Assembly (NCBI RefSeq): GCF_036588685.1
Contig: NC_086375.1
Span: 45,260,001-45,324,000 of the forward strand
Source of the DNA: Mytilus trossulus
Taxonomy: Eukaryota
Direction of reading: 5' to 3'
DNA: 64,000 nucleotides
Shown here: piece after piece, positions 1,651-62,118 of the stretch
How the letters are laid out: every line of letters starts with the position of its first letter
Position numbering within the stretch: position 1 is the first letter of the stretch
Translations under genes and position numbers: made by a program
The notes under the pieces: generated by a model
Databases searched by the model: none
The model's input: the letters and a program-made list of their open reading frames with translations, nothing else
Told to the model about the DNA's origin: nothing

Positions 1651-1702
1651 AACAAAACAACTTGTTACTACAATAATGAATTAAAATATTCAAATGATGG
1701 AA

Positions 1703-8478: not shown

Positions 8479-8525
8479 TTAAACAATCTTTGCCTCCATT
8501 ATTTCAGCCAAAGACTCTGTTTCAT
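8479..8525 (-). CDS. TIR-STING coding exon 11, terminal (DETESLAEIMEAKIV*)
   Basis: tttcag acceptor, correct phase, homologous to exon 6, TAA at 8481-8479. Confidence 0.82.
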
Positions 8526-10573
8526 CTGAAACATCAAAATAAAGGTACATTTGAGTTTATTCAAGGAAATAACTGAGGCTTCAAAAATATATGTTAATCC
8601 ATATGTTGTATTGTATATTGCATTTTTTTTTATTACATACTCAATTAATAAGTTTTCAAGGCTCAGATTTAAGTCCTATCCTCAATTTAAAAGTTATATA
8701 TAGATTTAAGTAGTTGGTATAAACAAATTAAAAGGTATACAAAAACATATTTAATACATTCTATTTCTGTTTGAACAATGATAAAGTAGGTCTTCTACAT
8801 TAAGCCTATACTTGGTCTTTATTTCCTCAATTTGCAATCCAGTTCTGCCATTAAACCTGTCTTAAATTTGGATAATAAAGTTGATTCTTCAGATAAACAT
8901 CACATATCAAACTTAAATTCTTATTATTTTGATAAATGAAATAGTTTCTCCTGTATTTTAAGTTTCTAACTCCCCAAAAAACATATCTCTTTTAAGCCAA
9001 AAGTCAATGGACAAAAACGGTTTTGCATTAAAATTAAACAAGAATGTGTCCCCAGTACACAGATATCCTCACTATCATTTTCTATGTTCAGTGGACCTTG
9101 AAAATGGGAAAAAAAATCTCTTATTTTGCAGTAAAATTTGAAAGATCATAGCATAGGGAACATGTGTACTAAGTTTTAGGTTGATTGGACTTCAGCTTCA
9201 TCAAAAACTACCTTGACCAAAAACTTTAACCTGAAGCGTGACGGATGAACAGACCAGAAAACATAATGCCCATAAATGAAGTATAAAAATATCAAAAGAC
9301 TGACTGTAAAACAGTGAACTTCTTATTTGTCAATTGTGCAAATCAATCTTACTGATATGTATAAAATGAATAGGAAAACTCACCATCAAAATAAACAAAT
9401 TCACAGCATTTGGCTTTTACAGGATCAGCTGACTCCATAAGATTCTTAACGATCTCATAAAAATTATATGCTTCTGATAAAATAGTGTCTGCAGTCACAC
9501 CTGCAATCCTCCATTCCTTCATCTCATGTAAACATGTAATAGGTGCAGCATATTGTCCAATAAAATATTTGTCCTGTAAAATATAATAAAATATTCGTAT
9601 ACTTAAACATGTGTATACCAACACTGAGAGAAAATGATTAAAGAAAATAAGAGGGAAAAAAAATAAATGCAAACAGCACTTTATAAATTTCATGCGACTG
9701 AAGATCTTTTCTGGATTGACCTTCATCTGGAATGATCAAAGTGGTGTTGTTTACAAAGGGAAAGAAGCATGGCATATGAGAATATGAATAAGTATGAAAA
9801 CAGACATACCGGCTGATCAGTAATTTTATATATTTGACAAGAAAATGGTCTGCTCCCACCAAAAGGATGAATATCAGGAGTAGTTGTAAAGTTAGAAATT
9901 CTGTCATTTTTGTCTTTCATCACACCTTTAGCATCACAACTCTTTGGTATAATTATAAACAGAGTTTCAGGACATTTATAATTGCTGATATCCATTTTTT
10001 TAAAAGACTGGTCAATATTTTTCAAAGCATCTGTAAAAAGAAGAAAATACTCAAAATCATCAAAGCATATCTTATCTGAAAATATGTATGTTCAACTTTC
10101 TCTATTTACTCTTATTTGAATTTGAAATAAGAAACACAAATGAAATGTGTTTTACATGTTAATGTCAAGGTAGATAAAAAGTTTTGAGTCAACCAAGAAC
10201 ATGTATAAAAGCCTTTGCATTAATCATAAGTCATACAAAGTGGGGACTACATGTACCACCCTTTAAATATACCAACAATACAATGAAATAAACAATAAAC
10301 AATAAAGTAAATATATTTATTCATAACAAAATATGCCACATGAACAATTTATCATGTCACTGCAAGCACTTGACAATTAATCTGACGGTCTTCATAAGAA
10401 AAATTCTGGCGTAAATTTTTTCCCTTTAAAATACAGAAAAAATACTTACATAAAGCGCACAAGAGTATAACACGCAGGGATAAAGACAAATAATCTCTCT
10501 TGTAAGATAAAAAATAAGATACAATCCATGAATATTCCTTTGTCATCAACAGTCACTCAGACTGACAAACTAT

Positions 10574-10632
<59 letters not shown>

Positions 10633-13600
10633 GTATATTAATGATCTTACCTGGTAGGATAATTCTTAGATAATTAACAACATAACCCCAGGCAAGTCCA
10701 TTGGCTACATCACCAGCAGGTAGTAACATTTCTGTTTTCAATGGAAAATCTTCTCCTAAAACAAAACCAATTGTTTACAGACCTATCAGAGTTATGTCCC
10801 TTTACAAATGGGAAAACAATCTGAAATACTTGTTTCTTTTCTTTAACTTTAGTTTGCCTCAACTAAATGGTATGAAAGTTTTACACAATGCTTTTTACCA
10901 CAAAACACAGATTAAGTTTGAAGTTTGGTGGCGTCACTTTTGTAAGACATAATAGTGTCCTGTGAAAAAGTGTCCACATGAACAGTTTTTCATTGAAGTT
11001 TGTAATTTGATAATGTCATGGAATGGTGTCCCTCTAAATCATTTCTGTCAGGACACTGTCAGGACATTGTCAGGACATCAGTGTAACCCATCACCACAAA
11101 ACAAATATCACGTTTGAAATTTAATGTCATCACTTTTACCATTCTAGAGTTAAGCTCCTTTATAAATGGAAACATATGTGAACTGTTTGTTTATATTCTC
11201 TGACTTTAGTTTGCCTAAACCAAATGTTATGTAACTTATACACAATTCAGAGATAAAGTTTGAAATTGGTGGCCTCCCTTTTATGTTCATGAGTTATGCC
11301 CCTTTACAAGTAAAACAAATAGGTATACAAATTACGTTTTTTCATTTATATAGTGTCCTGACCTTTTGATTTTTTATCATGACCTGATGAAGGATTATTA
11401 ACACTTTTAATATGTGTTGTTTGCACTGAAATTTGTGTTATACATTTATAACAAACAAAATAAACCAAAAAAAACAAACTAAAAAAAGGTTCTTTGATAA
11501 ATAACAGGCACTCACCACTGACAATATTGTGAAGACTTTTAAGATGAGATTTAGTTTGTTCATTAAAAGGTACATAAGTAACCCACTGTAGAGCATCAGG
11601 TATGTAGATATCATTCCGTCTATCTACCACAGGGATTACCCTTACCCTCCTTTTAAGGATACCATCATGGAGCGCAGCTAGTACCCTCAGTTGAAGCATC
11701 TTGTCCTTAACTGAATTCTTGGTCATCAGAAAAATGAACCATCTACAATTCTGCACAGCTTTAATAAGTGTATTAGACTTCACCTCTGGGTCATTTGGGC
11801 TGTCAGGATTTTTCAGGATACTGTGTATCCCCTTCTCTTCCAGATATTCAATAATTTCTTTAGCACTCTGTTTGTCTTCTTTGTCTTCAGAATGAGCTAT
11901 ATACACCTGATATTGGTATTTAAGTTCTGGTGTAGATTCCAAGTTTTCTAACTTAGGCCTGGTGATTGGGCTTTCCTGAAAATGATTAAGATATCCATAC
12001 TATCTATATGATGATTGTGGCCTTAGATGAAAGTGTTTTTAAATTATAGATACTGTACATTTTGAATTAAATCTTATAGAAATAGTAATAATGAAAGTAA
12101 AACACCATGGAACTAGAAACAACAAAAAGCCATCAGCCACAAAACATTTGTTCTCATCGCCTTATTTGATTCCACTTTGTATGAGCTATTGATGACTATT
12201 GCATTTCTTTTACAATTCAAATTAAGGTGTTAAAGGGGACAAAATCAAATTTTCAATCTGTTTACTGTGTCCTGTTCTATTATTGTGCCTGAACTTAGCT
12301 GTGTCAAGAACAATGGTGTGTATTTTTAGCCAAAATTCATAAATACCTAATCAATGTTTCAGTATGTTTGAGCAAGTAAACACTATTGTGCAGGGGAAAC
12401 AAGTTAAACTTTAATACAAACCTTTGGCATAACTTTTTCAGTTAATTGTAAATCTTGTTTTATTGCTTTTACTAAAACTTCAGACACTTTCTCAGTTTCA
12501 TCTGTAAAAAAAATTGATGATTTCATAATTATTTTTTTATGCCACATTACAGTTTACAAAACAAAAAATGTCTGTATTTTGCAGAGTCTGTTTAGACTGG
12601 TAAATTTAAGACAGGAGGTGATTTATATTAGGCAGGAATGGCTTGTTTTTTTATGTTGTATCACACACTAGATATATTGTAAATAGACACTTCATAGATG
12701 AAAAATATCTCTAGAAGTCTTTTGGTTATTTGTGTTACATGGGTTGCTGACTCATTTACAAAACTTTCCATTTTGAATTTTCCTTCCTCAGAGTTCAGTA
12801 TTTTTGTGATTTTACTTTTTACATATAACAAGTACCAGTACCACATATGATGCCAAGTCCCTTTTAATTTATATGATGTGCTCATCATGTATTATTACTA
12901 TTATCAATATCAAGACTACATTTTGTATTATAAATTTTCAATTTTTGTATATTACCATTGAAAAGAACAACTCTTGCTTTATTTCTAGATATATCAAAGT
13001 GGTTTATCACAGAGTTCATGGTATAGTAAAACCTTGCTAACTGTAACTTCTTGTCATCTATACTAAACTTTGCTAAATGGTGATCTTCCATTGCCTTCAT
13101 TGCTCCTATGGCACTTGGGTATTCACAAATACAGAAATATGTCTGAAAAGGTATTTGAAAAGCATGAATAAACACAATAAATCATATGAATAGTTCATTT
13201 CTTGTGAAACAATTATTCTCAAGATCTATAGAAAAAAAATTGTAGATTCTTAACCCTTCAGAAAACACTCAGACTATAATATTATAATATAACCACAATT
13301 TGAGAAATCTGAAAAATTGTTAAAATGCTCTGGTGGAGTGATGCCCCATTGGCATTCATATACTTATACCACATCTCTTTATCTTTAACTTATACTGATT
13401 TTTATAAAGTCATCTCTGCAATTGTGCATTGATTTTTTCAAATGGGTTAATAAATGAAAACGAAAACATTGGCAGGTTTTGCTAAATTCAACTACAATGT
13501 CTCATGCAAGTGCAAAATTATATATGCCCTTGTAAAAATTATTTGGACAGGAGCTCAAGGTTTCTAAACATAAACAATGAAATTATAACCAATACATGAT

Positions 13601-16600
13601 TTTCCAAAACTGGTGATATAGAAGGAAACAAACAACTATTAAAGCTCTTATAGATAGAGATTCAGATACCATACATATCTATTCACCTGATCACCATCAG
13701 TAATACTGTAAAGTTTGACAGCAAACTTTCTAACGTTTCCCCCTCTAATTGTATTGGAAAGTTCCAAATGTGTGATCAGTGTGATATTTTCATCTATTTT
13801 CGACAGATCAAAATGGCAAGTACATGATGTTGGTACCATTTCATAAAACTTTGTAGACACATGGTTCTGAAGGGAGTTTGATTGATACCAATCCGATTCT
13901 TTCAGTTTATTTTCCAAATCTGTAAAAAATAAACAAGTGATTAAACTGTACATGTCATATGCAGATAAATTTAAATCTTAAATAAATTATTCAAAGAAAA
14001 AATTGGTAAGACATGCTAAATAACCACAGATTTACAGTTGAAAAAAACTAAAATCAATAAACTGAATACAAGAACAAACTAGAGAATACTAAAAGATAAG
14101 CCATCATAGAGGGCCCCTAAGAAGTCCACAAATAACTTGTAATGTTTTTTTTTATCATAGCTCATAATAATGCAAAGCAGACATTCAAACCAAACAGCAA
14201 ATGGTTTTAATGCTAACATTTTGTTCATATGCACAGCAATGACTAAGTTGAACTAATGTTTTGTTCATGACTTTTTATGTTTTTTTTTTTTTTCCTTCCA
14301 CCTGACAGTCGAAAAAGTGGTGTGTACTCAGATGCACTTCTAGTAATTAACATCTTCAATGAAAAAAGATGAAAACAAGAATGTGTCCCCAGTACACAGA
14401 TGCCCCACTCGCACTATCATTTTCTATATTCAGTGGACCATGAAATTGGGGTCAGAACTCTAATATGATAAAATTAGAAAGATCATATCATAAGGAACAT
14501 GTATATTAAGTTTTAGGTTGATTGGACTTCAAGTTCATCAAAAACTACCTCGACCAAAAACTTTAACCTGAAGTGGGACGAACAGACGGACGAAACAAAA
14601 GGATGGACAAACAAACGCACAGACCAGAAAACATAATGCCAATAAATGGGGCATAAAAATAATATTAAAAAAGTATACCTGGTAGAATGTATTGAAGTAA
14701 TCCTGCATAATGTGACCATACCAGACCATGAGCTACATTTCCTGCAGGCATCAATTGTCTTATAGTCTCTTTTTCTGAAATAGGAAATAGCACATTTTTT
14801 ATACACAGATTTCTTAATCACTGTCTGTTCTGTCAAAAATTGCGAAACAAGGTTTACTATTTTAACCATAAAATAGAAGTATCAATATGTACTTAGGCTA
14901 GCTTAACTTTTACTTCTCATTTAAAAATATTTTGAAGTAAAATGGAAACAATTACAGCAATAGTACCCGTTTCTTTTTATGTTATGTCTAAGCTAAAAAG
15001 GTAAAGACACTATCAGCACTCTTGGTTACAATCCCAAGCCCATTTTTATTTGGTGATGGAAGTTGGAAGGTTCAGAGAGTTCATTGAAATTTGACGGGAA
15101 AACTAGTAAGCCTTGTCAATTAAAATCTGAGTCGAATACACATTGCCAAATGTTGGGTTTCAAGTTCTGTTGTTGCCATGTTGTTTTAGTTTTAATGCAT
15201 GTTTTTTATACACCTAGGTAATTTCACAAGGGGGCAGTTTTTGTCAACCCTAGTTCCCTACAGGCATGTGTATACATCTAAATGGTTTTAAAATAAATGT
15301 CCATCAAATGCTCATGTGGTTTTTAAAAAGTTAAAGACAGGAATGAATCCAGCAATTTTAAAAAGTAGATTTTGCAAAATTACATGGGGATAATGGAGAA
15401 GACTGCCTGAATCTTATTTTTGCAAATTTCTTAAGCTGTTAAAATGTTATTTTCTCAGTGGTGTTCAGTAAAGTTGTTTTCCATTTCATTGTCTTTCAAT
15501 TTTTTTGTCATGGCATTGTTATTTTCTCTTAAACGAGATTTTAATATCCCCTTGGCATCTTTCACCTCTTTTTCTGTATGACATACATCTACATGTATGA
15601 TAAAAGGAGATGAGGGATATGTGTCAATAAAACAACAATCCAACAAGATTAAGATTTTTTTTCTTTGCGTTGTTTATATGGATTTTTAATTTTGCAAACT
15701 GTCTACACTTACAAGTACTGTAAATTGTGTCTTTTGTATAAACTAAATCAATATACCTCTTATCCTTTCAATGGTTTCAGTTACCCAAGAATCATTTTCT
15801 TTTGTAAACACAATTTTTCTAGCTTCTTGTAATACTGCAATTTGTGGAATCTATAAACATGATAAAGAAAATAAAAAATATTAACTATGACAATTATATA
15901 ATGACCTGTCACCAAGAAACTAACAGAGTACATTTGCGTAAGTTGGTTTTATATGACGAGGACATAATTTTTCAATCAGTTAAAGGTGGTACCTAACACT
16001 ACAGGGAGATAACTCTGTAAAATCAGCTAAACATTTTAACTACGTTGTGTTGTTAAGGGAATAGTAAGCTTCTCAATGATCACAATCAGTGTTTGTCAAA
16101 CTGCTATATAACCAGTGTCATTTTTCTGATAAAATGTTTGGTTCAAATTTTTTGAAAGTTTTATATTTTTGTCAAATGGTCAAAGTAAATACTTTGTCAA
16201 AATTTTATGAAAATTAAACGAGCCAAATTAATTTTAGTCAAAGTGTTAGGTATCACCTTAATTGAGTTCTGGAGCTGGCATTTCAGTAACTGCTAGTAGT
16301 CCTTTGTTTATGTATGTATCATTTTCATTGTGCTTAGTTTCTTTTGTTGCCTGTTTTGAAATCAAACTCTTCTTTTAAACTGCATTTTACTGTGCTTATT
16401 TCTGTGTGTTTATTTATTCTTAGTACATTTGCTAGAGGTATAGGGAGAGGGTTGAGATCTCACCAAACATATTTACCTTAACCTCGCCACAATTTTGTGC
16501 CTGTCCCAAGTCAGAAGCCTCTGGACTTTGATGGTTTTGTATGTTTTTAAATTATAGTTTATTTATATGTTAAAGAGTTTAGTATGACGATCATTTTCAC

Positions 16601-17526
16601 TGAACTAGTACACATTTTTATTTAGGGGTTAGCTGAGGTTCACCTATGGATGTGGGATTTTCTTGCTGAATTGGAGATCCATTGGTGGCCTTCAGCTGTT
16701 ATCTGCTATTTGGTCAGGTTGTTGTCTTTTTGACAAATTCTCCATTTCCATTTCCATTTTATTTAAAGTAATGTGCTTGTCTCATGTGCATCTTATGGCT
16801 GGGCTCTAGTCCTAGCCAGGTCAAAGGCTTGAAAATTAGACTTTGATGCTTCCCTGTTAAGCAAATGTCTGAACTTATGAGTTAAAACATCCATGGTCAG
16901 CTCAGAGTTTAAATAAAGAATTTGTACCATCATGATTTTAATCATGTCATCTTTTATAAAAAAAAAAATAGAATGAATTGGTGCGAACTTATCTTAATTT
17001 TTGAAAATGTTTAAGATCCTGAAAAATCCATGATCTTAGATTTAAGATTATTCAGATTTATAAGGAACATTGTTATCTTTTCTTCAATACACAAAATATG
17101 CCTGTGCCACACAATTTTGTATAGTAAGTATCAAGAATTTTTATTCCATCTGAATAAATGAAGGGTTGAGTTAAGTGTTAAAAATACAACAACAAAACAA
17201 ATACATACATCTTTCTCTTCTATACCATGTAGTAAAAGAACTACTGAAAGCTGCTGCTTCCTTTGTGATCTCTCTAGACCTATTAGTAGTTCTAGATTGC
17301 ACCAGCTACTTTGCATGGCATTCTTAGTGATGAATAGAAGTGTCTTATCAACTTTATCCACCAATTCTGTTAAACTAGACAGAAAAATTTGTCCTGGTTG
17401 TAATTCATCTTGGGTAAGGATGCTTATGTCTTTAAACACTTCCAATTTTGGAAGGATTTCATCAAATACCAGTTGTTGATCATCAAGTTCATTACTGTGA
17501 GAAAGGAATACTTTTATGGTAGTCAT
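8479..17526 (-). CDS. STING1: Tandem TIR-STING-TIR-STING protein (soluble STING-family cyclic dinucleotide receptor), 11 coding exons, 2031 nt, 676 aa
   Basis: Manual splicing: 17526-17209, 15850-15757, 14774-14679, 13919-13687, 13142-12956, 12501-12422, 11975-11516, 10755-10651, 10030-9810, 9573-9384, 8525-8479. All introns are GT-AG with compatible phases and there are no internal stops. STING signatures occur twice: GNVAHGLVWSHYAGLLQYILP and GDVANGLAWGYVVNYLRIILP (human [20 protein letters not shown]); CEYPSAI and GQYAAPI (human LEYATPL). Two TIR domains begin VFLSHS and VYIAHS. The symbol indicates family, not proven orthology. Confidence 0.92.
9038..9290 (+). mobile_element. HINE/pearl-like non-autonomous element (intronic)
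   Basis: AACAAGAATGTGTCCCCAGTACAC start, GACG-type microsatellite, 3' hairpin remnant; paralogous to 14375-14659. Confidence 0.7.
9384..9573 (-). CDS. TIR-STING coding exon 10: STING domain 2 (DKYFIGQYAAPITCLHEM...CCEFVYFD)
   Basis: QYAAPITCLHEM corresponds to human EYATPLQTLFAM; tttacag and GTGAGT splice sites. Confidence 0.9.
9810..10030 (-). CDS. TIR-STING coding exon 9: STING domain 2 core and lid (DALKNIDQ...LFIIIPKSC...FGGSRPFSCQIYKITDQP)
   Basis: LFIIIPKSC corresponds to human LYILLPLDC; ttttacag and GTATGT splice sites. Confidence 0.9.
10576..10629. repeat. (TC)27 microsatellite about 20 nt from the exon 8 donor
   Basis: Perfect dinucleotide run. Confidence 0.98.
10651..10755 (-). 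CDS. TIR-STING coding exon 8: STING domain 2 dimerisation helix (EDFPLKTEMLLPAGDVANGLAWGYVVNYLRIILP)
   Basis: STING signature; ttttag and GTAAGA splice sites; absent from the ORF track on this strand. Confidence 0.93.
11516..11975 (-). CDS. TIR-STING coding exon 7: linker and TIR domain 2
   Basis: YQVYIAHSEDKEDK...AVQNCRWFIFLMTKNS...RVIPV...IPDALQWVTYVPF TIR pattern; ttttcag and GTGAGT splice sites. Confidence 0.9.
12422..12501 (-). CDS. TIR-STING coding exon 6: last helix of STING domain 1 and linker (DETEKVSEVLVKAIKQDLQLTEKVMPK)
   Basis: ttttacag and GTTTGT splice sites, phase 1->0; resembles human SLSQEVLRHLRQE; paralogous to exon 11 (DETESLAEI). Confidence 0.85.
12956..13142 (-). CDS. 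TIR-STING coding exon 5: STING domain 1 (TYFCICEYPSAI...LQLARFYYTMNSVI...KARVVLFN)
   Basis: Aligns to human CVLEYATPL...[21 protein letters not shown]...CRLIAY; canonical splice sites. Confidence 0.9.
13687..13919 (-). CDS. TIR-STING coding exon 4: STING domain 1 core and lid (DLENKLKES...IRGGNVRKFAVKLYSITDGDQ)
   Basis: Aligns by eye to human VSQRLYILLPLDC...DPNI...RAGIKDRVYSNSIYEL; ttttacag and GTGAAT splice sites. Confidence 0.9.
14375..14659 (+). mobile_element. HINE/pearl-like non-autonomous element (intronic)
   Basis: Same family as 9038-9290; GACG/GACA repeats; ends ATGCC...GGGCATAAAAA. Confidence 0.7.
14679..14774 (-). CDS. TIR-STING coding exon 3: STING domain 1 dimerisation helix (KETIRQLMPAGNVAHGLVWSHYAGLLQYILP)
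   Basis: Close match to the STING [11 protein letters not shown] motif; tttcag and GTATAC splice sites. Confidence 0.93.
15757..15850 (-). CDS. TIR-STING coding exon 2: end of TIR1 (IPQIAVLQEARKIVFTKENDSWVTETIERIR)
   Basis: tttatag acceptor, GTATAT donor; phase 0->1 bridges exons 1 and 3; resembles the TIR C-terminal region. Confidence 0.85.
15985..16257. mobile_element. MITE in a TIR-STING intron
   Basis: TIRs GGTGGTACCTAACAC / GTGTTAGGTATCACC in a T(T/A)AA context. Confidence 0.75.
16470..16762 (+). repeat. Interspersed repeat; other copies at ~17950-18205 and ~41120-41280
   Basis: Shared cctgtcccaa...cactgaactagtacaca...tctctttgacacattccccatttccatt. Confidence 0.75.
17209..17526 (-). 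CDS. TIR-STING coding exon 1: TIR domain 1 (MTTIKVFLSHS...SSWCNLEL...GIEEKD)
   Basis: TIR box1 VFLSHS, BB-loop-like DELQPG, WCxxEL; acceptor tttcag at 17535-17534 just upstream of the ATG, donor GTATGT at 17208. Confidence 0.9.
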
Positions 17527-43601: not shown

Positions 43602-44843
43602 ATGGGCTCTCTGTTATCAAAAGGAAGCACTATTACAAAGGACAAGTATGAGAAGACGAAAGAACAAGAACCAAACATATCAATAAAGGTTAGCGAGTTT
43701 ATTGCAAAGATAATAGCAACACCACCTTTAAAATTGAAACTGATTGACATTTACCATGGGATATATGAACGATTATGTGGACCCTGGGGAAGAGTGACTG
43801 GCAGCTATGCTGATAGTCTTTCTATGTCCACATCAGATGTTGATATAATATTGGATAACATATCTGTTAATTCAAGCCCTGAAATGACAATGAACAATTC
43901 GTGTACCATGGAACTAGTTATTTTTACAGAGGATAATGCTATACCACCGGGATGCTGTTGGCTACGAGCCTACCAAAAAGTTGCTTTCATGGGAAAATAT
44001 GTGCCGTCAGATTCAACTTCTTTTCCTTTTGTAAGGGTAAATGGACTGACTAAACACGTTACAGATGCTGAATGGAATCTTGTAGATATCAAAGGATACA
44101 AATGCTTGTCTTGCCGAAATATTAATGAACAGAGGGCGAAGAGTGGTTTAACTTCCTTCCCTTTTATTAATCGATTCCTGCCACACTGGATACCACATGG
44201 ACCAGCATTTAAACAGACATATTTTTGGATATTTGATGTTGATATCGTGGATGCTTTCAAATGTAAAACACTACCTCCAGTGTTACAAAAATGGGCAAAA
44301 CGAACACGAAAAACATGGCCATCACAAAGCACTATAGAAAAAGCTTTAGAACAAGGTTGTCATGTAATGAGTCTGCCTTCAAAAATTTCTTCTGATGAAT
44401 TTACAGAGGTTGAGTTTAGACTCGGTTATGGGGCCATGGAAAAGATTCTAACAGAATCTCTTAGTGACTGTCAAAAACAATGTTATATCCTACTTAAGAT
44501 AATACTAAAAGAATACATAGAACCACGATTCCCTGGTGAAGATATTGTATCGTCGTATGTCATGAAGATGTTGATATTCTGGATGTCAGAGGAAACAGAT
44601 TTAGATACTTGGCGTCCAGAGTGTCTTCTTGAATGCTTGGAGATGTGTCTAGGAAGGCTGTTTGATTGGATTGAATATGGTTATTGTCCGAACTTCTTTA
44701 TTCCCGAATATAACATATTTCGCACAAAACTTACAAGTATACACTCTAATAATTTTATCTGTTTGATGAGGGAAATCATGGATTTAAAATGGAAGGTATT
44801 GCTTCATTGTAAAACAATGCAATGGGTGAATGTATACGTATAG
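43602..44843 (+). CDS. cGAS-like receptor (cGLR, Mab-21 family nucleotidyltransferase), 413 aa, single coding exon; C-terminus possibly truncated
   Basis: NTase motif TG67S68-x10-D79VD81; HGPA followed by third acidic residue D214 (DVDIVDAF); Mab-21 C-lobe motifs WPS...GCHV, FRLGYGAMEK, CYILLK, SSYVMKMLIFW, CPNFFIPEYNIF; acceptor tttacag at 43594. Confidence 0.9.
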   Translation: MGSLLSKGSTITKDKYEKTKEQEPNISIKVSEFIAKIIATPPLKLKLIDIYHGIYERLCGPWGRVTGSYADSLSMSTSDVDIILDNISVNSSPEMTMNNSCTMELVIFTEDNAIPPGCCWLRAYQKVAFMGKYVPSDSTSFPFVRVNGLTKHVTDAEWNLVDIKGYKCLSCRNINEQRAKSGLTSFPFINRFLPHWIPHGPAFKQTYFWIFDVDIVDAFKCKTLPPVLQKWAKRTRKTWPSQSTIEKALEQGCHVMSLPSKISSDEFTEVEFRLGYGAMEKILTESLSDCQKQCYILLKIILKEYIEPRFPGEDIVSSYVMKMLIFWMSEETDLDTWRPECLLECLEMCLGRLFDWIEYGYCPNFFIPEYNIFRTKLTSIHSNNFICLMREIMDLKWKVLLHCKTMQWVNVYV

Positions 44844-49374: not shown

Positions 49375-49398
49375 GTTACTTAGTAAACAAAAAGAACA

Positions 49399-51421: not shown

Positions 51422-53711
51422 ATTGGTTCTGCAAAGGTTTTTTATATTCATTTTTATTATGTATTTTCATCAATATGAGGAAATAACAAGCAAAAAAAAA
51501 AGGATCGTATAAATTTAATAGATAATGCAAAAACAATTCCTTTATCTGTAGACATTATAAATCTTCAAAAAAGGAGGCTACGATAGTTTGCGGTTATTTT
51601 GGTTGTTCAAAAGAGGTAGCCTAAGCATGGTTACATGTTTAACCTCGCTACGTTCTCTATGTATTTGCCTTTCTCTAGTCAGGTACCCGTAATTCAGTTG
51701 TCGTTGCTTTATGAGTTACAAATTGATTTTCGTTCATTTTTTTGTTTTTTACATAAATTAGGCCGTTAGTTTTCTCGTTTGAATTGTTTAACACTGTCAT
51801 TTCGGGGCCTTTTATAGCTGACTATAAGTTATGGGCTTTTCTTATTGTTGAAAGCCGTACGGTGACCTATAGTTGTTAATTTCTGTGTTATTTTGGTCTC
51901 TTGTGGGAAGTTGTCTCAATGACAATCATACCACATCTTCATTTTTATATTAAACACTCGTCTGGTTATTAAATCAATAGCATTTCGCACTCGTAGCGAA
52001 CACCTTCAAATTGATTCTATATTTTGCTGAGCTGTCAACAAAATAATATTTGAAAACAAAACACCTTTGAAAAACGTTATCAATAAAACTTATACGTGCA
52101 CTAATTGAATTTCAAAATTATGTAATTTCAAAACTAGTGGTCCAAGGACACAGTTATTGTCCTTTGGTTTTCGTTGTCTACGAATATAGTAACTAGTGTA
52201 AACAGTGTATAACTTGCATGTTTTATTTGATACACTTTCCCAGTCTATTTATTGATGCCAAATGCATGAAATATTAAGTAGGGAGATGTAATTACATGTC
52301 AAAAAAATTAGGTGCTGAATATTTATGTTAAGTAGTGAATAGGTCCAGTTCTGAAAGGTCAAATTTTATCGCGTTTGAAGCTATCAAACTGAATTTTACA
52401 CCCCCTTAACACAGAATTATCAATATTTTGAGTCAGAGCTGGTAGAAGTTTTTATAATTTTGTTATTATTTGTTTCACTGGTAGTACACTACACTGTAAA
52501 AATCTTTTTGAGAAAGAGCAGGTGCGATTTTTTAAATTTGAATTTATTTTCTAAAAGAAATGCACTACGAAATAGCTGTGTTCTAGGGACAAGTATGGTC
52601 CGCTGAGCTGGTTGACACGTTGTATAGAAGATTCCCGTTCACTTGAATAACACATTATAACTTTTTTAGTTATCGAAAACTGTTCCAACATTGTTCATGT
52701 GTTTCTAAGGTATAAACATTACTAGTATGTCATCTTTACCGTGCCAAAGCAACGACATTAAACATCAGTTGTATTTGAAAAGAAAAGAATGACAAAAAAA
52801 TCAGCAGTTTAAACTGACAAAACATCAGCAGTGTTAATTGATAAAAAGCCCTAAAAATTTTTTCACTTCTCTTTAAGATTTTTTTCTGCTTAAAATTTAG
52901 AATCAAACTTCACGTATTATTTTTTTCACACGGAAGTGGTTTTTTTTGTAATTTTCACATCACATTAGAAAACCAAAAATAATATATAAAAAATAATCAT
53001 ACCTTTACAAATCAACAAAAAAAGAATGAATTACAAAACACTATATGTCGTCTTAGTTATACAGATATATGAAAAGAACTATTCGTTATACAAATGTGTG
53101 TAACATAAACTGTAAAAGGAGTGTTGATTTATATGCAAGCACAAAGAAAGATGGAGTACATCAAGGTTCTTTTTTAATCACAATACCATGAAGATGGGAA
53201 AAGTTTTAAAGTATGACCACTTATAACTATGCATTTAAATTTTATGTTTATAAAGTATCCGAGGTGTAGATTTGTGTGTTTCAATGTCAGTATTTCAATC
53301 GTTTGGTAACATTTATGATTTTGTATTTTCCTTTGACATCAATCATAATTGACATAGTGACCAATGCTTTCTTTACAGGTGATATATGCTTACTGCTACT
53401 GTGTTTTTGATTTTCCCAGCTTAACATAGCTGTATTAGTGTGTATTCTTGTCTTGTCTTTAAAATTGTTAACTGTATTTTCATTGTTTTGTATAATAAAT
53501 CAAATAAAACTATATGAACCTATCTATCTCACAGAAATAATTATACTATAATAACGTCAAAACCAGTGACAACTCTACGACGAATTTTATCCATCGGGTC
53601 ACCAGTGATGACGTATAGGAAAGAACAAAAAATTACTTCCGCAATTTACATATCTAACATTGTTTAGCTGATATTAAAACGAATTGTATATACAGAATGT
53701 GTTTTCAGTTT

Positions 53712-54030
53712 CGTCCCCGAGGGTATCACCAGCCCAGTAGTCAGCACTTCGGTGTTGACATGAATATCAATTATATGGTCATTTTAATAAATTTTCTGTT
53801 TACAAAACTTTGAATTTTTCGAAAAACTAAGGATTTTCTTACCCCAGGAGTAGATTTCCTTAGCCGTATTTGGCACAACTTTTTGGAATTTTGAATCCTC
53901 AATGCTCTTCAACTTTGTATTTATTTGGCTTTTTAACTTTTTTGATCTGAGCGTCACTGATGAGTCTTATGTAGACGAAACGCGCGTCTGGCGTATAAAA
54001 TTATAATCCTGGTACTTTTGATTACTATTC
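53712..54030 (+). mobile_element. Retrozyme-type repeat monomer carrying a hammerhead
   Basis: Family members at 26177-26535(-), 26790-26870(-), 28581-28852(-), 32970-33246(+), 34970-35060(+), 63128-63460(+), ~6614-6800(-). Confidence 0.8.
53951..53994 (+). ncRNA. Type I hammerhead ribozyme, intact core
   Basis: Stem I GCGUCA/UGGCGU, CUGAUGA 53957-53963, stem II GUCU/AGAC, GAAA, palindromic stem III CGCGCG, GUC cleavage triplet 53986-53988. Confidence 0.9.
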
Positions 54031-54769
54031 AGCCTTATATCACCATCACTGGTGATCCGATAGATAAAATCTGCCACATCCAGTCAGTGATTTTGTTAAA
54101 TATTTTTTTTCTGCTTTGTATCTATGATCTATTCAAACATATTTTCCCCATTACATCATTTATGTGTCTGTCCTAAGCCATGAGCATATGCTTCAGTAAT
54201 TGTTGTTGGTTCATGTCTGTCATATTTGTTTTTCGTAAACTGTTTTGATATAAAAGAGAGACGAAAGATATCAAAAGGACATTCAAATTAATTGCTAACG
54301 TCCTGGCTTAAAAATCAAAAGATAAACAGACAAAACATAGTACATAAAACAGAACATAGAAAACTAAAGACAGCCAAAATAACACTACCCAAAACTGTGG
54401 GTGATCTAAGTAACTCCGAAAGGGTAAGCAGTTCCTGCTCAACTTGTAGCCTGTCATGTTATTCATTTTAGTAAAAGCCTGGTAATAAATCTAATTCGGT
54501 TGGTGACATTCGGGATAAATGGGGCGGTAACGACATAAAAATATATATTCACTATCATCTATGAAGGGATGTTCCATAACGATCAACCAAATGGTTATTG
54601 CGGTCGTAAAATTTATCGATTAGGCTCTTATATTTCTCATGTATGCCGACTGTACGGTATACGTGTATGTACTTATCAAAAGTCGTATGGTTGACTATTA
54701 TTGCTTACATCTACCTCATTTCAATTTTGGTGCTAAGTTACATAATAGGAGATCATACCTCATCTCATT

Positions 54770-54940
54770 ATAGCTGGAGTGATGGGAGAGATTCACCAAC
54801 CTTCCGGTCGGTAGAAAAATTGACAATACTATTCAAATAAGATTTTGAGTTGAACCTACTTGCCACGTTCAGGATTCGAACTAACAACCTCGCTGTTGAC
54901 AGGCTAGTGATACAGCAGTTCGGTAATTTCGACCACTCGA
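54770..54940 (-). mobile_element. Degenerate tRNA-derived SINE
   Basis: Minus-strand cgagtggtc...atcactagcctgtcaaca..gaggttgttaGTTCGAATCC; same family as 31670-31937. Confidence 0.6.
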
Positions 54941-56609
54941 TGAATGTTGATACAAAGAAATCGAAATTCATGATTTTCATTAAGTAATAGATTGTCTATA
55001 TTTGATTTATTATGGTGTTTACCCATTCGTGTGAACCGCAGTTTGGTGTCCGAATATGTTCGTTATTGTTATACAGTTTAAATGTTGTAATCTACAATCA
55101 TATTTCTTATTTATCCATTTCTCTGTGCTGAGTGTTCTTGCGTTTCTTTGTATTGTATGCTTGTCACGTAGTATATTTCTTAAAATGTCCTGTACCAGGT
55201 CATGCATATGGCATTTGTTATCCGTTTATTAATAGTCCGTGGGTATGTGAGTTGTCGTATGTTTTTGTTGCAATACAGTGTTCCTGTTGTTCCATAGTTA
55301 ATATGTTCCCTTAGTTTTCATGTGTAATCCGAATTTGCTTTCTCTTAATCATTTTTTTTAATTTTTACCCGTAGTATACCTTTGTTGGCTTTACTCGATA
55401 CTATTTGATATTTATGTTATAAGCTAAATTATGTCCAGTGAAGACCATAAGACTTGTGTATCAGGACACAAACATTATTGCGTTAGGACACAACAGTTGG
55501 ATTATAGAGTGTTATAGATTTATAAACAAAATAATACAGTTGTTACCTTAGAACGCAGACGAATAAGGACTGTGTTAATCTAAGTATCAGTTGGTTTCCA
55601 TCTAATTCTAGAAGATTTTCTTTCATATATGTTCATCAAGACTTTCAGAATCAAGAAGGAAAACGTGTTCAAAGAAAGAACTAAAATCACACAACAAAAG
55701 TATTGCAAGCGCACCAATGCATCAATCGAGGTTGTCACTACTTACAACTGAAAGGCTAATATACACTTAGTTTCTTCTAAGATTTCGAACACTTACAAGA
55801 CATTCACTAATGATATATAGTGGTTAGTCCTTAACTGGTCAACTAAAAAATTAACATCACTATGAACCATAATTGGAACCATACGCCAAGTTCATACATA
55901 CAACTTCTCAGAAACTCGTACTTATCATGATTTTGACAAATAGTTGGGTTTTTTCCGTCACAATCTGGATCATTAAGAATGCGTATTCTGAATAGACAGC
56001 ATTTCTTATTTTGAATGATTCGTACATGTACTAGTCTCTAATTCAGAATAGCATTCACTGTTGGATACAGATTAACCTATATAGAATCCTAGAAAAAAAA
56101 TCAAACAGAAAATTTATTTGACATAAACACTGTCAAAAATACTAAACCGATCAATACTATCCACACTGATCATTGTCTACTCTTGATAGACAAACATTCT
56201 ATATTTGACATCCTTTATAAATCAAAATATTCATGCATAACTGGGCTAAATTTTCATTTATCTTTATGATTAGTGTACAAAAGTAGTATTGTAAACTCTT
56301 CGTTTCTGATGAGAAATACTATATACTCACTCAGGGATGCACCCGAAAGCAATTCATTTTTTTTTATGGTTTTCTGTACATAAAAGAAGAGAACAAAAGG
56401 AAGATATTTTGCCTTGAACCCTCTGTTATGGTTCATTGACTTTGAAAGTTTGCATATTTAATTATGTTAACTTGGTGTTAACTCCTTGCAAAGTTAGTTT
56501 AAATTTTTGCTATCAAATGATATACAGACAGAAAATTATCTGTCAAAAGTTGATAATTTTAAACAAATTAAAAACAAATTAATTTCCACTTTGTGATGAT
56601 TATGTAGAA

Positions 56610-57465
56610 ACAGGAAGTTCGACCAGATTGACATAATTCTATAATTTTGGTTTCGACAACACCCTTCAATCAATAAGTGGATCGCCACTTGTTTATGTTA
56701 CAGCCGGCAGTACATGACAAGTAAGTGTTTCTTTTTTGTAATTCAACTTTTTCTAAAATGAATATTGAAACTATAGATGCTTATCAAATTGAGATTGTAA
56801 TGGCTATTTATAATTTGTTACTGAAAGGTTTAAATTGCTTTATTCGTCCATAAAGAAACCTTACAAGTTAAAAGTTTCGATATGCCGTTTTGATACCATA
56901 AACAATTACAAAAACGATAAGTACCGGTCGTGGTTTTATGCATTAACGTAAATGTGGGTGTTTTTTTCGAGTGGTAAAAAAATCAATCCTGTTCTATTAA
57001 AATATACATGTTGTATGAAATAAACAATTTTACTCTGTCTCCGTGACATGCAGGTTTTCTATATTTTCGATATCTATCTTGACCAAATATCATTTGTTTC
57101 CTTTGAAGAAAAGATGTTGAAACAATTTTTGATATCAGACAACATTTATTATTTACTCTATTCCGAAACGACCCTCAGTTGGGAATTAAAGAGACACTGT
57201 GTATATTTAATAAAATGTTTCAGAAAAAAGCAATCGCAAAAGTAGGATTATAGGATGATTTAACATATTGGTTTAATCAAAAGTGGGACAAACTAGAACT
57301 GCGAAAGTCGGATTTCGTGAAAGTTCACTTAAGTGGGAGTTTCGACCATATTTCTTTTTTGCATTTTTCAATTCAACTATTGGAAACAAATGTCTCAAAC
57401 ATACATGCTTTTGTGGTATCACGTTTACAAATTCATATATAGGATATGTGTTATATATTTTACAG
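56610..57465 (+). promoter_or_regulatory. Putative TLR-B promoter, non-coding exon and 5'UTR intron
   Basis: ACAGGAAGT 56610-56618, donor GTAAGT 56721, acceptor ending 57465. Confidence 0.55.
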
Positions 57466-57486
57466 GTCATTTATCAACAAAGGACA

Positions 57487-59144
57487 ATGCTAATAATTGT
57501 ACTGGTTAATTTTTTATTTGTGTCTACTTTCCTAAGTGAGAGGATGAATGCTGATTCAAAATTCTCCTCAGTGTGTATTTTCAATACAAGGTGCCGGTGT
57601 TTTAATGAGACAGGAACATCAAAATTACATGTGAATTGCGCACACAGTATGGTTAAGAAAATTCCAGAAGTTCCACGAAATGTTTTTAATTTTAATCTCC
57701 AACATAACATTATCAGGAAAATAGAGGACAACGTATTTCAAAATTTAACGACACTATATCCTTATTGGATTTATCACATAATGAAATTATCAGTTTGAAA
57801 TCAAACTCTTTTGAGGGATTGGGAGAACTAGAAGAGTTAAACTTAAATGACAACCCAATACAATATACAGATTTTCCAAATGGAACGTTTATCCCGTTAG
57901 TATCTCTCAAACGTCTTTACATTAAACGTACATTTCAAGCTATGAATAGACATAGAAACATGTTTTCAGATAAAACAATGTCAGATTTGAAAACATTGGA
58001 GAAATTGGAAATAGACATTCGTGCAAAATCAAAAAAAGACATTATGTTTGGAGAAGGATATAAATATTTAATTAATCTTAGTTCTCTCAATATTGGCTTA
58101 TGTTATATTCAAGTTTTTGTTGATAGAAAAATCTTCCAGTTTATGCCTCTTTTGACAAATATTTCTTTTGACATGCATTGTCGAATGTCTATTTTCCCCG
58201 GAGGGCATCAAAGTCTACAAAGCGTAAGACAACTTTACGTTCACCATTTAATTTCCGTACAAAATTTATCATATTTTAATAGTTTTACAAACGAATTAAA
58301 ACGGACACCCATTGAAACATTGACCTTTCAAAAGACTTTTCCAAATAGTTTGGATTACTTCCCTTGGAACCCAATTAGTGAAAGTTTCTACAACTCGTCT
58401 CTAAAAAAATTACGAATGACCGGTAATAAACTTTATGAAAGCTTTTCATCGTCTAAACTTAATGCTCCTCCTTCTAGCTTACAAGAACTGAATCTTTCCA
58501 GTAATAGACTTTACATGTTTGTGTTAGATTTAGGGAATATTCGAAAGCTAAATCTACAAAAGAACCTTCTTGGAGCATTTTTAAGTTCTCATAGATATAA
58601 AAGGTCAAGGACAATTAACAGCAAACTTGAATATATAGATTTGTCGATGAATCATATTGAAAAACTTACATTTCGAATATTTCAGGGACAACCAAATTTA
58701 AAATATATCAACCTTAGTCGTAACAAGTTGCAAAAGATGACATTTCGAGTTTCTCGATTGCATTATCTTCGTTATTTAAATTTATCAACAAACAATTTTA
58801 CGACATTAGACAAAAATGCTATGGAAAATTTCGATGTTCTATCTAAAAAAACGTCCTTCATAGTAAATTTACGAAACAATGCATTGCACTGTACATGTAA
58901 AACATTGCCATTCCTAAAGTGGACCACCAAAACAAAAGTTGATGTACTGATTAACGATAATTGTACTTTAGGAGATGGGACGATCGTGAGTTTCAGCTCA
59001 ATAGACTCAATAATACAGCAACTACAGAAAGGATGTACGACATATACATCCTTAATTATTGGTTTGACTACGGTCTTGGCAGTCATTTTGGCCGTTGTAG
59101 TGTTTGCTTTAGTATATAAATACAGATGGATAGAAATGTTGTGA
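57487..59144 (+). pseudogene. Toll-like receptor copy B; frameshift near 57757 and TIR domain lost after YKYRW
   Basis: ATG at 57487 in the same context as the paralogues (acaaaggacaATG); apparent 2-bp insertion (cta-TA-tcc-tta-ttg); LRR, LRRCT and TM in 57765-59144; homology ends at 59130, where a dispersed repeat follows. Confidence 0.88.
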
Positions 59145-59147
59145 ATA

Positions 59148-59533: not shown

Positions 59534-59945
59534 ACAGGAAGTATCACGAGACTGACTTGATTACTAGTATATAATTTTCAGTTTCAGAAAACATCCTTCA
59601 ACCAATCTAAATCATTCAGTACAAGGAAAGTAAGTTAAATATTTTTTTAATACAATCATAATAAACAAATAAAATACAAAATGCCTTGTAAAATTGAGAT
59701 TGAAACGGCTATCTGGAATAGATTACTGCTTTCTACGTCTATTTTTTTTTGTTTGTTTTTTGGGGTTTTTTTTTTAGTAGTGAAAACGAAAAATTAACAT
59801 GTTTCGATATTGATTTTTGATTTCATAATACAATACAAAAAACAAGTCTCTTTTTGATTACTTTGTGAATATGGAAATATTAGTAGTTTTCTATTATTGT
59901 TGCATTTAAATAAACATTTATATGAAAAAGGTTTATATTTTACAG
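59534..59945 (+). promoter_or_regulatory. Putative TLR-C promoter, non-coding exon and 5'UTR intron
   Basis: ACAGGAAGT 59534-59542, donor GTAAGT 59630, acceptor ending 59945; upstream flank similar to ~56420-56620. Confidence 0.55.
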
Positions 59946-59967
59946 GTCCCTTAACCAACAAAGGACA

Positions 59968-62118
59968 ATGCTGATAAATGCAATTGTTAATTTTCTATTT
60001 GTGTCAACTTGCCTTAGTGTTAAAATGGATGCCGATTTAAAATTATCCTCCGTGTGTATTTTTAATACTCAGTGCCGGTGCTCAAATGCGACAGGAACAT
60101 CGCAATTACATGTTGATTGTGCGAACGGTAAACTAACAGAAATTCCCAAAGTTCCACGAAATGTTTACATTTTAAACCTGCAACATAACTGTATATTGGA
60201 AATAGAGGACAACGTATTTCAAAGTTTAACGAATCTATACATGTTGGATTTATCAGATAATAAGATTAATCTTTTGAAATTACACTCTTTTAAGGGATTG
60301 AGAGAACTCAAAGTATTAAACTTAAATGACAATCCAATAGCGTATGAAATGTTTCCAAACGGTGTTTTTATCCCGTTAGTCTCTCTTAAACATCTGTGCA
60401 TTAAAAGTACAACTAAAAAGGTTAGTAAAAGTACAAAAGTGATCTCGGATCAAGCAATATCAGACTTGAAGACATTGGAGAAATTGGAATTAGACGTTCC
60501 TATACAATCCGCCACACATATTATATTTGGAGACGGATATAAATATTTAAAGCATCTTATTTCTCTCAATATCGGAAGATGTTATTATCCAGTATACATT
60601 GATGAAAAAACTTTCCAGTTTCTTCCACATTTGACAAACATTTCTTTTGACAATCAGTGTGATATGTTTATCATCTCGGGTGGACACCAAAGTCTACAAA
60701 GCACAAGACAACTTTACGTGCACCGTTTAGTAAACAATTTGGTACAAGATTTACTACAGTTTGATAGTCTGACAAAGGAGCTGAAACTGACACCAATAGA
60801 AACTTTGTCATTTGAAAACACCTTTTCGTGTAGTTTTGAATATTATCCATGGAATCCAATAAGTTTAAATTTAAACATCTCGTCTCTAAAGAATCTGAGA
60901 ATGACCGACAATAGACTTGGTGAAAGCTTTCCACCGTCTAAACTTTATCCACCTCCTCCAAGTTTACAAGAACTGAATCTTTCCAGTAATAAACTCGAGA
61001 AGTTTGCGTTAGATTTAGAGAATATTCGAAATCTAAGTCTACAAAATAATTATCTAGGAAGATTTCTAAGTACTCGCAGTTATAAAATGTCAAAACAATC
61101 TAGCAGGCTAGAGTTCATAGATTTGTCGATGAATGGTATTGAAAATCTAACATTTGTATTATTCAAGGGACAGCCAAATTTAAAATATATCAATCTGAAT
61201 GATAACAAGCTGCAAAAGGTTACTTTTGATGTTTCTCAATTGAAAAGTCTTCGGTATTTGGATTTATCAAGCAATAATTTTACGACATTAGACGAGAAAG
61301 CTATGGCAATGTTCGATGGCCTGTCTAAAATTACCCATTTCACAGTTAATTTACAAAAAAATGCATTGCGATGTACCTGCAACACACTGCCGTTTTTAAA
61401 GTGGATTTTCAAAACGAAAGTTGATTTGCTGCTTAACGAAAAGTGTAATTTAGAAGATGGGACTGGTTTTAGTTTCTACCCAATAAACTCATTAATACAG
61501 CAAGTACAGAATGGATGTACGTCATATACAACCTTAGTCATAGCGTTGTCTGTAGGCTTGGCAGTCATGTTGACCGTTATTGTTTTGGCTTTAGTGTATA
61601 AATACAGATGGAAACTTCGATACATGTTTTACCTTGCCAAAAGGAAACACTACAATTACAAGGCTTCCATAGACAACGGGGAATACACGTACGATGCTTT
61701 TATCTCGTATTGTGATGATGATAGAGCATTTGTATTACAAGATTGCATTGCAAACTTAGAAACTGAAGGGAATGCTAAATTATGCGTGCACCAACGAGAC
61801 TTCCTACCAGGCCAAGAGATAACAGTCAATATTACAAACGCTATACATGACAGCAGAAAGACGGTTTGCATAATAACAAGAAAGTTTTTTGAGTCTTACT
61901 ATTGTATGTTTGAATTCAACATGGCCCGAATGGAAAACATTTATTCTCGGGATGGACGAAATATTATTTTTCTAGTATTTCTAGAGCAAATTCAACCAAA
62001 AGAAATGCCACTTATGATGCTTGAACTTATAGAGAAACAGTCTTACATCGAATATCCCAATGACGAAGAAGGAAATATTGTGTTCTGGGATAAAATTCAA
62101 GAAGCTATTCATTCATGA
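59968..62118 (+). CDS. Toll-like receptor copy C, intact, 716 aa (single-cysteine-cluster type)
   Basis: Signal peptide, LRRNT (C-x5-CRC...C), LxxLxLxxN repeats, LRRCT NALRCTC, TM LVIALSVGLAVMLTVIVLALVY, TIR with box1 YDAFISY, BB loop RDFLPG and box3 FW. Confidence 0.96.
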   Translation: MLINAIVNFLFVSTCLSVKMDADLKLSSVCIFNTQCRCSNATGTSQLHVDCANGKLTEIPKVPRNVYILNLQHNCILEIEDNVFQSLTNLYMLDLSDNKINLLKLHSFKGLRELKVLNLNDNPIAYEMFPNGVFIPLVSLKHLCIKSTTKKVSKSTKVISDQAISDLKTLEKLELDVPIQSATHIIFGDGYKYLKHLISLNIGRCYYPVYIDEKTFQFLPHLTNISFDNQCDMFIISGGHQSLQSTRQLYVHRLVNNLVQDLLQFDSLTKELKLTPIETLSFENTFSCSFEYYPWNPISLNLNISSLKNLRMTDNRLGESFPPSKLYPPPPSLQELNLSSNKLEKFALDLENIRNLSLQNNYLGRFLSTRSYKMSKQSSRLEFIDLSMNGIENLTFVLFKGQPNLKYINLNDNKLQKVTFDVSQLKSLRYLDLSSNNFTTLDEKAMAMFDGLSKITHFTVNLQKNALRCTCNTLPFLKWIFKTKVDLLLNEKCNLEDGTGFSFYPINSLIQQVQNGCTSYTTLVIALSVGLAVMLTVIVLALVYKYRWKLRYMFYLAKRKHYNYKASIDNGEYTYDAFISYCDDDRAFVLQDCIANLETEGNAKLCVHQRDFLPGQEITVNITNAIHDSRKTVCIITRKFFESYYCMFEFNMARMENIYSRDGRNIIFLVFLEQIQPKEMPLMMLELIEKQSYIEYPNDEEGNIVFWDKIQEAIHS

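Follow-up and report, generated by a model that had tools for sequence, protein, structure and literature searches.

A cGLR gene in loose divergent linkage with a tandem TIR-STING gene in a duplicated immune block of Mytilus trossulus

Gene content of the locus

The window analysed here is a 64,000-bp stretch of the Mytilus trossulus genome (C3:45,260,001-45,324,000; assembly 1.30 Gb) that holds a gene with TIR and STING domains, here called STING-2, a gene for a cGAS-like receptor (cGLR) and three copies of a Toll-like receptor (TLR) gene. We examined it together with 130 kb upstream and 20 kb downstream, 214 kb in total, and found the window to be one copy of a tandemly duplicated immune block. 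N runs are absent from these 214 kb, and the GC content is ~30-35% across the whole window. All the genes named in a preliminary description of the window (the TIR-STING gene, the cGLR and the three TLRs) were recovered in their places:

9376-17526, minus strand: STING-2, predicted TIR-STING-TIR-STING gene (Pfam TIR_2/TIR and STING_LBD, PDB matches, tblastx against STING-3, dN/dS of 0.07 against STING-1)
37995-38156, plus strand: putative non-coding exon 1 of the cGLR gene (mapping of the paralogue exon, aligned window sequence, 5' extensions of transcripts)
43595-45024, plus strand: exon 2 of the cGLR gene (open reading frame, Pfam, PDB profile, fold, transcript contigs)
49399-51421, plus strand: TLR-1 (Pfam LRR_8 and TIR, tblastn against TLR-3, nucleotide alignment)
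57487-59144, plus strand: TLR-2 (Pfam, tblastn against TLR-3, nucleotide alignment)
59968-62118, plus strand: TLR-3 (Pfam, orthologues in M. coruscus and M. californianus)
17020-51684, no strand: young core of the segmental duplication (blastn of the window against the 130 kb upstream; 90-98% identical to C3:45166246-45206638)

The TIR-STING gene is real, since its minus-strand TIR and STING exons are matched by Pfam as well as by PDB profiles. The TIR exons (17131-17526 and 11346-11942) match PF13676 at 1.5e-9 and 9.3e-11, respectively, and also PF01582. Two exons of the STING ligand-binding domain (LBD), 13678-13923 and 12942-13145, reach 28.6 and 25.8 bits with PF15009, both above the Pfam cut-off, and a third LBD exon (9376-9576) gives a weaker Pfam match (9349-9726). 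Searched singly, the exons furthermore match STING proteins of known structure, among them the oyster 'Metazoan TIR-STING fusion' (6wt6/6wt7). Together, PF15009 and the PDB matches identify a cyclic-dinucleotide-binding STING domain. A protein-database search with the second TIR exon gave no match within the length range searched.

Translated comparison (tblastx) with STING-3, a divergent paralogue 20-40 kb upstream, delimited about ten conserved exon blocks in the order TIR-STING-linker-TIR-STING:

17200-17526 and 15752-15850, minus strand: first TIR domain (TIR1)
14677-14787, 13678-13923 and 12954-13148, minus strand: first ligand-binding domain (LBD1)
12419-12490, minus strand: linker
11511-11918, minus strand: second TIR domain (TIR2)
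10646-10762, 9822-10034 and 9376-9576, minus strand: second ligand-binding domain (LBD2)

All these exons lie on one strand, the linker exon is conserved, and their order is read from the genome. As predicted from this exon order, STING-2 is most likely a tandem double unit that encodes a single TIR-STING-TIR-STING chain.

The first helix of the two STING domains differs in sequence, being ...GLVWSHYAGLLQYILP in LBD1 (14677-14787) and ...GLAWGYVVNYLRIILP in LBD2 (10646-10762). At the position that we take to be Tyr167 of human STING, LBD1 has Leu and LBD2 has Tyr; at the one presumably equivalent to human Ser162, LBD1 has Ser and LBD2 has Gly.

STING-2 and the cGLR gene are oriented head to head with 26,076 bp from ATG to ATG, in agreement with the preliminary description. 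The intergenic gap, measured from the STING ATG (17526) to cGLR exon 1 (~38.0 kb), is however ~20.5 kb and not 26 kb, because the cGLR has an upstream non-coding exon. No other gene is visible between the two, as had also been claimed: ten open reading frames (ORFs) of 72-116 aa at 18.5-41.4 kb are without a Pfam match, and an Rfam scan of the window matched no family. The two genes are loosely linked, in divergent orientation, within an immune block that duplicates. A bidirectional promoter for STING and cGLR was also considered and rejected on distance (~20 kb).

The cGLR and its transcript

The cGLR coding sequence (43602-44843) encodes 413 aa with Mab-21 and Mab-21_C domains (Pfam). The closest database protein to this ORF is 'uncharacterized protein LOC134709468 isoform X1 [Mytilus trossulus]'. 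In a search of the PDB, a profile of the cGLR and its orthologues matched Sp-cGLR1 (8gjy) at 6.8e-20, cGAS chains at ~5e-15 and also Cv-cGLR1 (8gjw), with MB21D2 and MAB21L1 weaker than cGLR1 and cGAS. The catalytic triad had been described as intact, and this view is upheld by an alignment of 107 sequences from an exhaustive HMMER search, in which G67, S68, D79, D81 and D214 stand in columns conserved in 101-102 of the 107 homologues. Both the G-S motif and the [E/D]h[E/D] ... [E/D] triad (D79-V-D81, D214) are present.

The same alignment was used for an AlphaFold2 model (pLDDT 85.6, pTM 0.86), an 8-sequence alignment having given a pLDDT of 49 and been discarded. According to this model the cGLR has the bilobed cGAS/Mab-21 nucleotidyltransferase fold. 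A Foldseek search with it returned MAB21L1 as top match, followed by Sp-cGLR1, Cv-cGLR1 (8gjw, TM 0.71) and cGAS, with E-values from 6e-16 to 1e-11 over ~400 columns. The calculated pI of the protein is 6.67; a pI above 8.5 is associated with dsDNA- and dsRNA-sensing cGLRs (Li et al. 2023).

Expression of the cGLR had been raised beforehand as a check, and spliced transcript contigs were indeed found. Twenty public runs from 13 studies contain 39-48% of the sampled 31-mers. We placed the contigs of four small runs (four studies, three organism labels) on 40800-46700; apart from repeats, the contigs of all four are confined to 43595-45024, which includes ~180 nt of 3' untranslated region. They depart from the genome at the acceptor ...TTTACAG/TTC (junction 43594/43595, AG at 43593-43594), and in two runs they extend 72 and 165 nt further 5' with sequence that does not match the window at 40800-43594. 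The 'RNA' label of these runs is itself a guess, yet the exon-limited coverage in all four argues for RNA. This pattern is that of a spliced mRNA, and the cGLR is transcribed.

The upstream exon can be placed with the help of the paralogue in the second block. Its NCBI isoform X1 has nine extra N-terminal residues, and the exon that codes for them lies 5.3 kb upstream of the ORF (C3:45187567) and ends in AA/GTAAG. The homologous exon of the window ends at 38156 with the donor GT at 38157, and its start is approximate, being set 162 nt or more before the donor. Where exon 1 of the paralogue has ATG, the window copy has ACG (38127-38158), and therefore the window cGLR should start at MGSLLSK.

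The transcript contigs match neither cGLR copy exactly. An origin from the upstream paralogue was rejected, as only 6 of the 33 listed coding variants match it; the contigs represent alleles or orthologues. Eleven of these variants are synonymous and 22 non-synonymous (omega, the dN/dS ratio, is ~0.5 against the transcript alleles), and the stretches 26-95 and 153-255, which contain the catalytic residues, are free of listed amino-acid variants. Altogether, by its catalytic residues, fold and transcription the cGLR looks functional, and an enzymatic activity is predicted.

Further observations concern the ends and the intron of the gene. Within the cGLR clade the N-terminus is conserved as MGxxxSK (43602-43625 in the window): MGSLLSK, MGLLLSK, MGYQLSK and MGYMLSK occur, and MGCAPSK in a 43%-identical relative. 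The remainder of the first 25 residues varies, and the Pinctada model is without the motif. MGxxxSK is a classic N-myristoylation consensus, through which the cGLR may possibly be membrane-anchored. The exon-1 ATG of the paralogue would bury the MG motif, and the two recent cGLR copies may differ in their N-terminus. At the other end, the contigs of three runs out of four have C in place of T as the first base of the stop codon (44841; TAG to CAG), and hence the cGLR C-terminus is longer in other alleles or species. The intron contains very high-copy repeats at 40997-41390 and 42540-42660, with a summed contig depth of up to ~138,000 in RNA-like runs and many loose ends, which are probably expressed transposon fragments.

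Duplication history and relatives in other bivalves

By blastn, colinearity with C3:45159754-45224810 extends over 11.4-62 kb of the window. This upstream block repeats the gene order of the window, with STING-1, a second cGLR (96% aa identity) and three more TLR copies. One unit of the repeat comprises STING, STING, cGLR and TLR x3, with a period of ~110 kb, the STINGs on the minus and the cGLR on the plus strand. Between the blocks lies STING-3 (C3:45231595-45252304), a divergent double STING gene with 42-70% aa identity per conserved block, and the exons of STING-4 lie at C3:45097786-45141854. The cluster contains 4 of the about six or seven STING genes of the genome, STING exons outside it being found only at C3:71.77 Mb, at C14:38.48-38.50 Mb and, as a fragment, at C3:83.40 Mb. 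Mab-21 genes number exactly two in the 214 kb, and a STING gene starts 26-29 kb (measured by ATG) from each; among 101 scored genome matches no Mab-21 gene lies at the other STING loci (C3:71.77, C3:83.40 and C14:38.49 Mb). We also observed that the four tandem-domain STING genes of the cluster lie within a stretch of 180 kb, and that a similar tandem STING gene seems present at C14:38483246-38498368.

Sequence divergence between the blocks is uneven. For STING-1 and STING-2, dS is 0.20 and dN 0.015 (omega 0.07; codon blocks of separate exons were pooled for the substitution counts only), and their introns are 69-88% identical; both STING copies are strongly constrained. For the cGLR pair, dS is 0.012 and dN 0.0165 (3 synonymous and 16 non-synonymous substitutions), giving an omega of ~1.4. 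The core at 17-51 kb is 90-98% identical between the blocks, whereas the old flanks at 11409-15906 and 52137-59130 are only 67-88% identical, with 67-76% at 52-59 kb, the TLR-2 region. The simplest reading of these data is that an old block duplication already included the cGLR, and that the core was then homogenised by gene conversion or unequal exchange. The two M. trossulus cGLRs form a sister pair among the Mytilus orthologues in the tree, a placement that fits recent homogenisation. Since old-layer flanks lie on both sides of the cGLR, the linkage would be at least as old as the split of STING-1 and STING-2 (dS 0.20).

The cGLR falls in a distinct clade that has an SH-aLRT support of 100 and a branch length of 0.9. 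Each species contributes one or two members, and these come from Mytilus spp., Pinctada imbricata (53%) and Mya arenaria ('MB21D2-like', 39%). The orthologues are CAC5405112 in M. coruscus, XP_071160982 in M. edulis, VDI08865 in M. galloprovincialis, KAK3087444 in Pinctada and XP_052802880 in Mya. Other Mab-21 matches in the M. trossulus genome are at most 40% identical and reach only residues 159-413, and both M. trossulus members of the clade adjoin STING genes. Judged by this phylogeny, the window cGLR comes from an ancient, low-copy bivalve lineage and is not a random member of the large mussel expansion.

In M. coruscus, a TLR (CAC5405107.1, 78%), the cGLR (CAC5405112.1) and a further TLR (CAC5405115.1, 68%) are found on one 636,951-bp contig, the cGLR accession being at most five from each TLR accession and the total span eight. 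If accession numbers follow gene order, which is our assumption, four gene models lie between TLR and cGLR, where they occupy the position of the two STING genes in M. trossulus. In the M. edulis gene model CAG2187853.1, the cGLR orthologue is joined to the N-terminal part of a second Mab-21 domain (GS...SDLD), and a second Mab-21 gene may follow the cGLR orthologue in that assembly. No second Mab-21 gene follows the cGLR of M. trossulus in the 214 kb examined.

The three TLRs of the preliminary description are all present as copies, but only TLR-3 is clearly intact. It is a single-exon gene of 716 aa that combines an LRRNT, leucine-rich repeats (LRRs), a transmembrane segment and a TIR domain in one ORF, as expected of a Toll-like receptor, and its orthologues in M. 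coruscus and M. californianus are 78-82% identical. TLR-1 is split into an LRR ectodomain ORF (49399-50886) and a transmembrane/TIR ORF (50879-51421) by a +1 frameshift, one extra T in a poly-T run near 50866, which may be real or a homopolymer assembly error. TLR-2 is a truncated copy that stops short of a TIR domain and has a 2-nt indel near 57760. Genome-wide there are at least 920 TLR-like candidates. The TLRs are probably co-resident neighbours in a duplicating cluster; they add nothing specific, and nothing links them functionally to the cGLR-STING pair.

Towards the edges of the window, the ORFs at 725-1816 (minus strand) and 62631-62849 (plus strand) share similar C-terminal sequences (...LLNQGYRYHKLLKTF... 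and ...LLRQGYESIKLRSSLKKFYGRHHEL..., respectively). Neither matched a Pfam family, and the two seem to be copies of one mobile-element protein. The window start is spanned by a local tandem duplication (2335-6827 against C3:45254139-45260000) of ~4.5 kb, with a period of ~8.2 kb and 88-93% identity.

Chance neighbours or a functional pair

With this locus in mind, we asked how far the neighbourhood of cGLR and STING exceeds what chance would give, a caveat that the preliminary description had raised itself. The genome contains at least 567 Mab-21 candidates, and 218 cGLRs and 9 STINGs are known from M. galloprovincialis (Li et al.). Assuming 218-1000 cGLRs, a genome of 1.30 Gb and four independent STING loci, a neighbourhood within 26 kb would arise at least once with a probability of 3.4-15% in a uniform and 1.6-7.9% in a clustered model. 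The caveat thus holds insofar as a chance of 1.6-15% is not significant alone, and the STING-cGLR distance by itself is suggestive. More than chance is favoured by three further findings: the cGLR is from a low-copy clade, Mab-21 genes are otherwise scarce on C3 (it has 3 of the 101 scored matches, and 2 of these are this pair), and cGLR and TLR are co-located in M. coruscus as well.

Several observations nevertheless weigh against a pairing of the two genes, beyond the chance of adjacency just given. The two blocks are one duplication event and not two independent observations, and STING-3 and STING-4 are without a cGLR of their own in the cluster. In the M. coruscus block STING was not seen, only the four gene models lying at its expected place. 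In the protein itself, clade-specific insertions widen the spacing of D81 and D214 to 132 residues, against the 50-90 given for cGLRs (PMC12424679). The cGLR copies show no detectable constraint since they last shared sequence, which fits relaxed as well as positive selection. Finally, the likeness to the bacterial CBASS defence systems, which the preliminary description had proposed, does not extend to an operon: the genes lie on opposite strands and ~20.5 kb apart, the cGLR mRNA has its own 5' exon, and they do not form a co-transcribed unit.

On balance, a functional pairing of the cGLR with the neighbouring double TIR-STING is plausible, although we would stop short of calling it probable. 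It is plausible because an active cGLR needs a STING, because over half of the genome's STINGs are here and because the linked cGLR is old and low-copy. If so, the cGLR would respond to a trigger by making a cyclic dinucleotide. Because the protein has a pI of 6.7, this trigger would probably not be a long nucleic acid. The neighbouring double TIR-STING proteins, which would be soluble, may bind the signal and act through their TIR domains. The cGLR and STING genes would then travel as a co-inherited cassette and not as a co-transcribed unit. The activity, the product, its recognition and the selective reason for the linkage are all predicted parts of this scheme.

Almost as likely as such functional coupling is a chance neighbourhood. 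Mussel genomes carry cGLR and TLR genes by the hundreds in tandemly duplicating regions of fast turnover, and one cGLR would have landed near the main STING cluster and later been copied by segmental duplication, with neither a specific synthase-receptor relationship nor selection for linkage. The large numbers of Mab-21 and TLR-like candidates in the M. trossulus genome, the cGLR and STING counts of M. galloprovincialis and a chance probability of up to 15% are in line with coincidence, as are the 20-kb gap with separate promoters, the origin of the two blocks in a single event and the two of four clustered STINGs that have no adjacent cGLR. It fits less well that the neighbour comes from a rare, ancient low-copy clade instead of the expanded families, that two of only three scored Mab-21 matches on C3 are this very pair, that the cGLR-TLR neighbourhood recurs in M. 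coruscus and that the linkage has persisted since a duplication with a dS of 0.20. We consider it rather improbable that the protein does not signal through STING at all, either having a protein-protein role like MB21D2, MAB21L or crustacean Mab21, or being a recent duplicate that drifts to loss. The name 'MB21D2-like' that NCBI gives to the Mya relative, MAB21L1 as top Foldseek match and a pI of 6.67 against the >8.5 typical of nucleic-acid-sensing cGLRs point in this direction, and so does an omega of ~1.4 between the copies and ~0.5 against the transcript alleles; shrimp Mab21 proteins moreover reportedly work outside the canonical pathway (PMC12928593). Against this stand the profile, which is closer to cGLR1 and cGAS than to MB21D2 or MAB21L1, the lack of listed amino-acid variants around the catalytic residues (26-95 and 153-255) and an intact ORF that is expressed in several species. 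Non-enzymatic Mab21 proteins commonly lose the GS motif and the acidic residues, whereas the GS motif and all three acidic residues are kept across the cGLR clade.

Very improbable, in our view, is that the tandem duplication arose in part as an artefact of assembly, two haplotypes having been joined end to end, so that each would carry one STING-cGLR-TLR block. For the central 17-51 kb, the identity of 92-98% between the blocks lies within the range of mussel allelic divergence, and the transcript contigs match neither cGLR copy exactly. The STING genes of the two blocks, however, differ at a dS of 0.20 and in introns that are only 69-88% identical, the TLR content differs between the blocks, and different STINGs (STING-3 and STING-4) flank them; NCBI, too, annotates both cGLR copies on the same 94.3-Mb sequence. 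Even if the artefact were true, the adjacency of STING and cGLR would stand.

Known systems provide a frame for the pairing of the mussel cGLR with its neighbouring STING. In the choanoflagellates Monosiga brevicollis and Salpingoeca macrocollata, an adjacent, independently regulated cGLR and STING lie 178 bp apart and form a working 2'3'-cGAMP pair (PMC12424679, bioRxiv 2025). As in the mussel locus, STING has as its neighbour a eukaryotic cGLR whose acidic triad is complete; the choanoflagellate STING, however, has bacterial-like features, while the mussel genes are ~20 kb apart and divergent, with a double TIR-STING fusion. Bacterial CBASS (e.g. Sphingobacterium faecium, PMC9402430) likewise places a nucleotidyltransferase of the cGAS/CD-NTase superfamily near a TIR-STING fusion. 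It does so in an operon, whereas the mussel genes are on opposite strands, contain introns, lie tens of kb apart and have the tandem TIR-STING-TIR-STING order, and the mussel system is known from its genes and not from NADase effector activity or abortive infection.

Among animals, TIR-STING fusions are known in oysters and annelids (PMC6723221; PDB 6wt6), as are bivalve cGLR radiations, and the oyster Cg-cGLR1 and Cv-cGLR1 are active and make 2'3'-cUA (Li et al. 2023, bioRxiv 10.1101/2023.02.22.529553). The oyster TIR-STING and Cv-cGLR1 structures are those matched by the window exons and the cGLR model. The solved oyster STING has one TIR and one STING domain where the predicted mussel chain has two of each, and the oyster cGLR1s are basic dsDNA sensors, in contrast to the mussel cGLR with its pI of 6.7 and its place in another clade; no linkage is reported for the oyster genes. 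Human cGAS and STING share with the mussel proteins the enzyme fold and catalytic motif and the ligand-binding domain of the receptor. Their genes lie on different chromosomes, human STING is a transmembrane protein with a C-terminal tail and no TIR, and cGAS carries a Zn thumb and binds DNA through a basic surface. A literature search found no paper that reports cGLR-STING linkage in an animal, and in the available part of the supplements of Li et al. 2023 and of Culbertson and Levin 2023 the M. coruscus and M. galloprovincialis accessions had no match.

The most far-reaching reading is that bivalves kept or rebuilt a linked cGLR-STING module, in which an ancient low-copy cGLR, possibly myristoylated, and single-chain double TIR-STINGs are co-inherited and undergo duplication and homogenisation as one unit. 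Such a module would be the first parallel in metazoans to the choanoflagellate and CBASS arrangements, and we regard this reading as unlikely on present evidence.

In summary, our analysis reveals a duplicated immune block in which a transcribed cGLR of an old clade is loosely linked to double TIR-STING genes. Metazoan cGLR and STING genes, in contrast to the adjacent ones of bacteria and choanoflagellates, are said to be 'no longer genomically linked' (PMC12424679, a preprint of the Kranzusch group), and a conserved linked pair in bivalves, if true, would be an exception to this stated loss in animals. With hundreds of cGLRs and as many as nine STINGs in mussels and oysters, the matching of enzymes to receptors is a practical problem, for which the linkage, if true, would nominate one concrete pair, the 413-aa cGLR and the adjacent double TIR-STING. 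Should the linkage be due to chance only, the locus would still be a clear example of a duplicating, homogenising immune block in the mussel genome.

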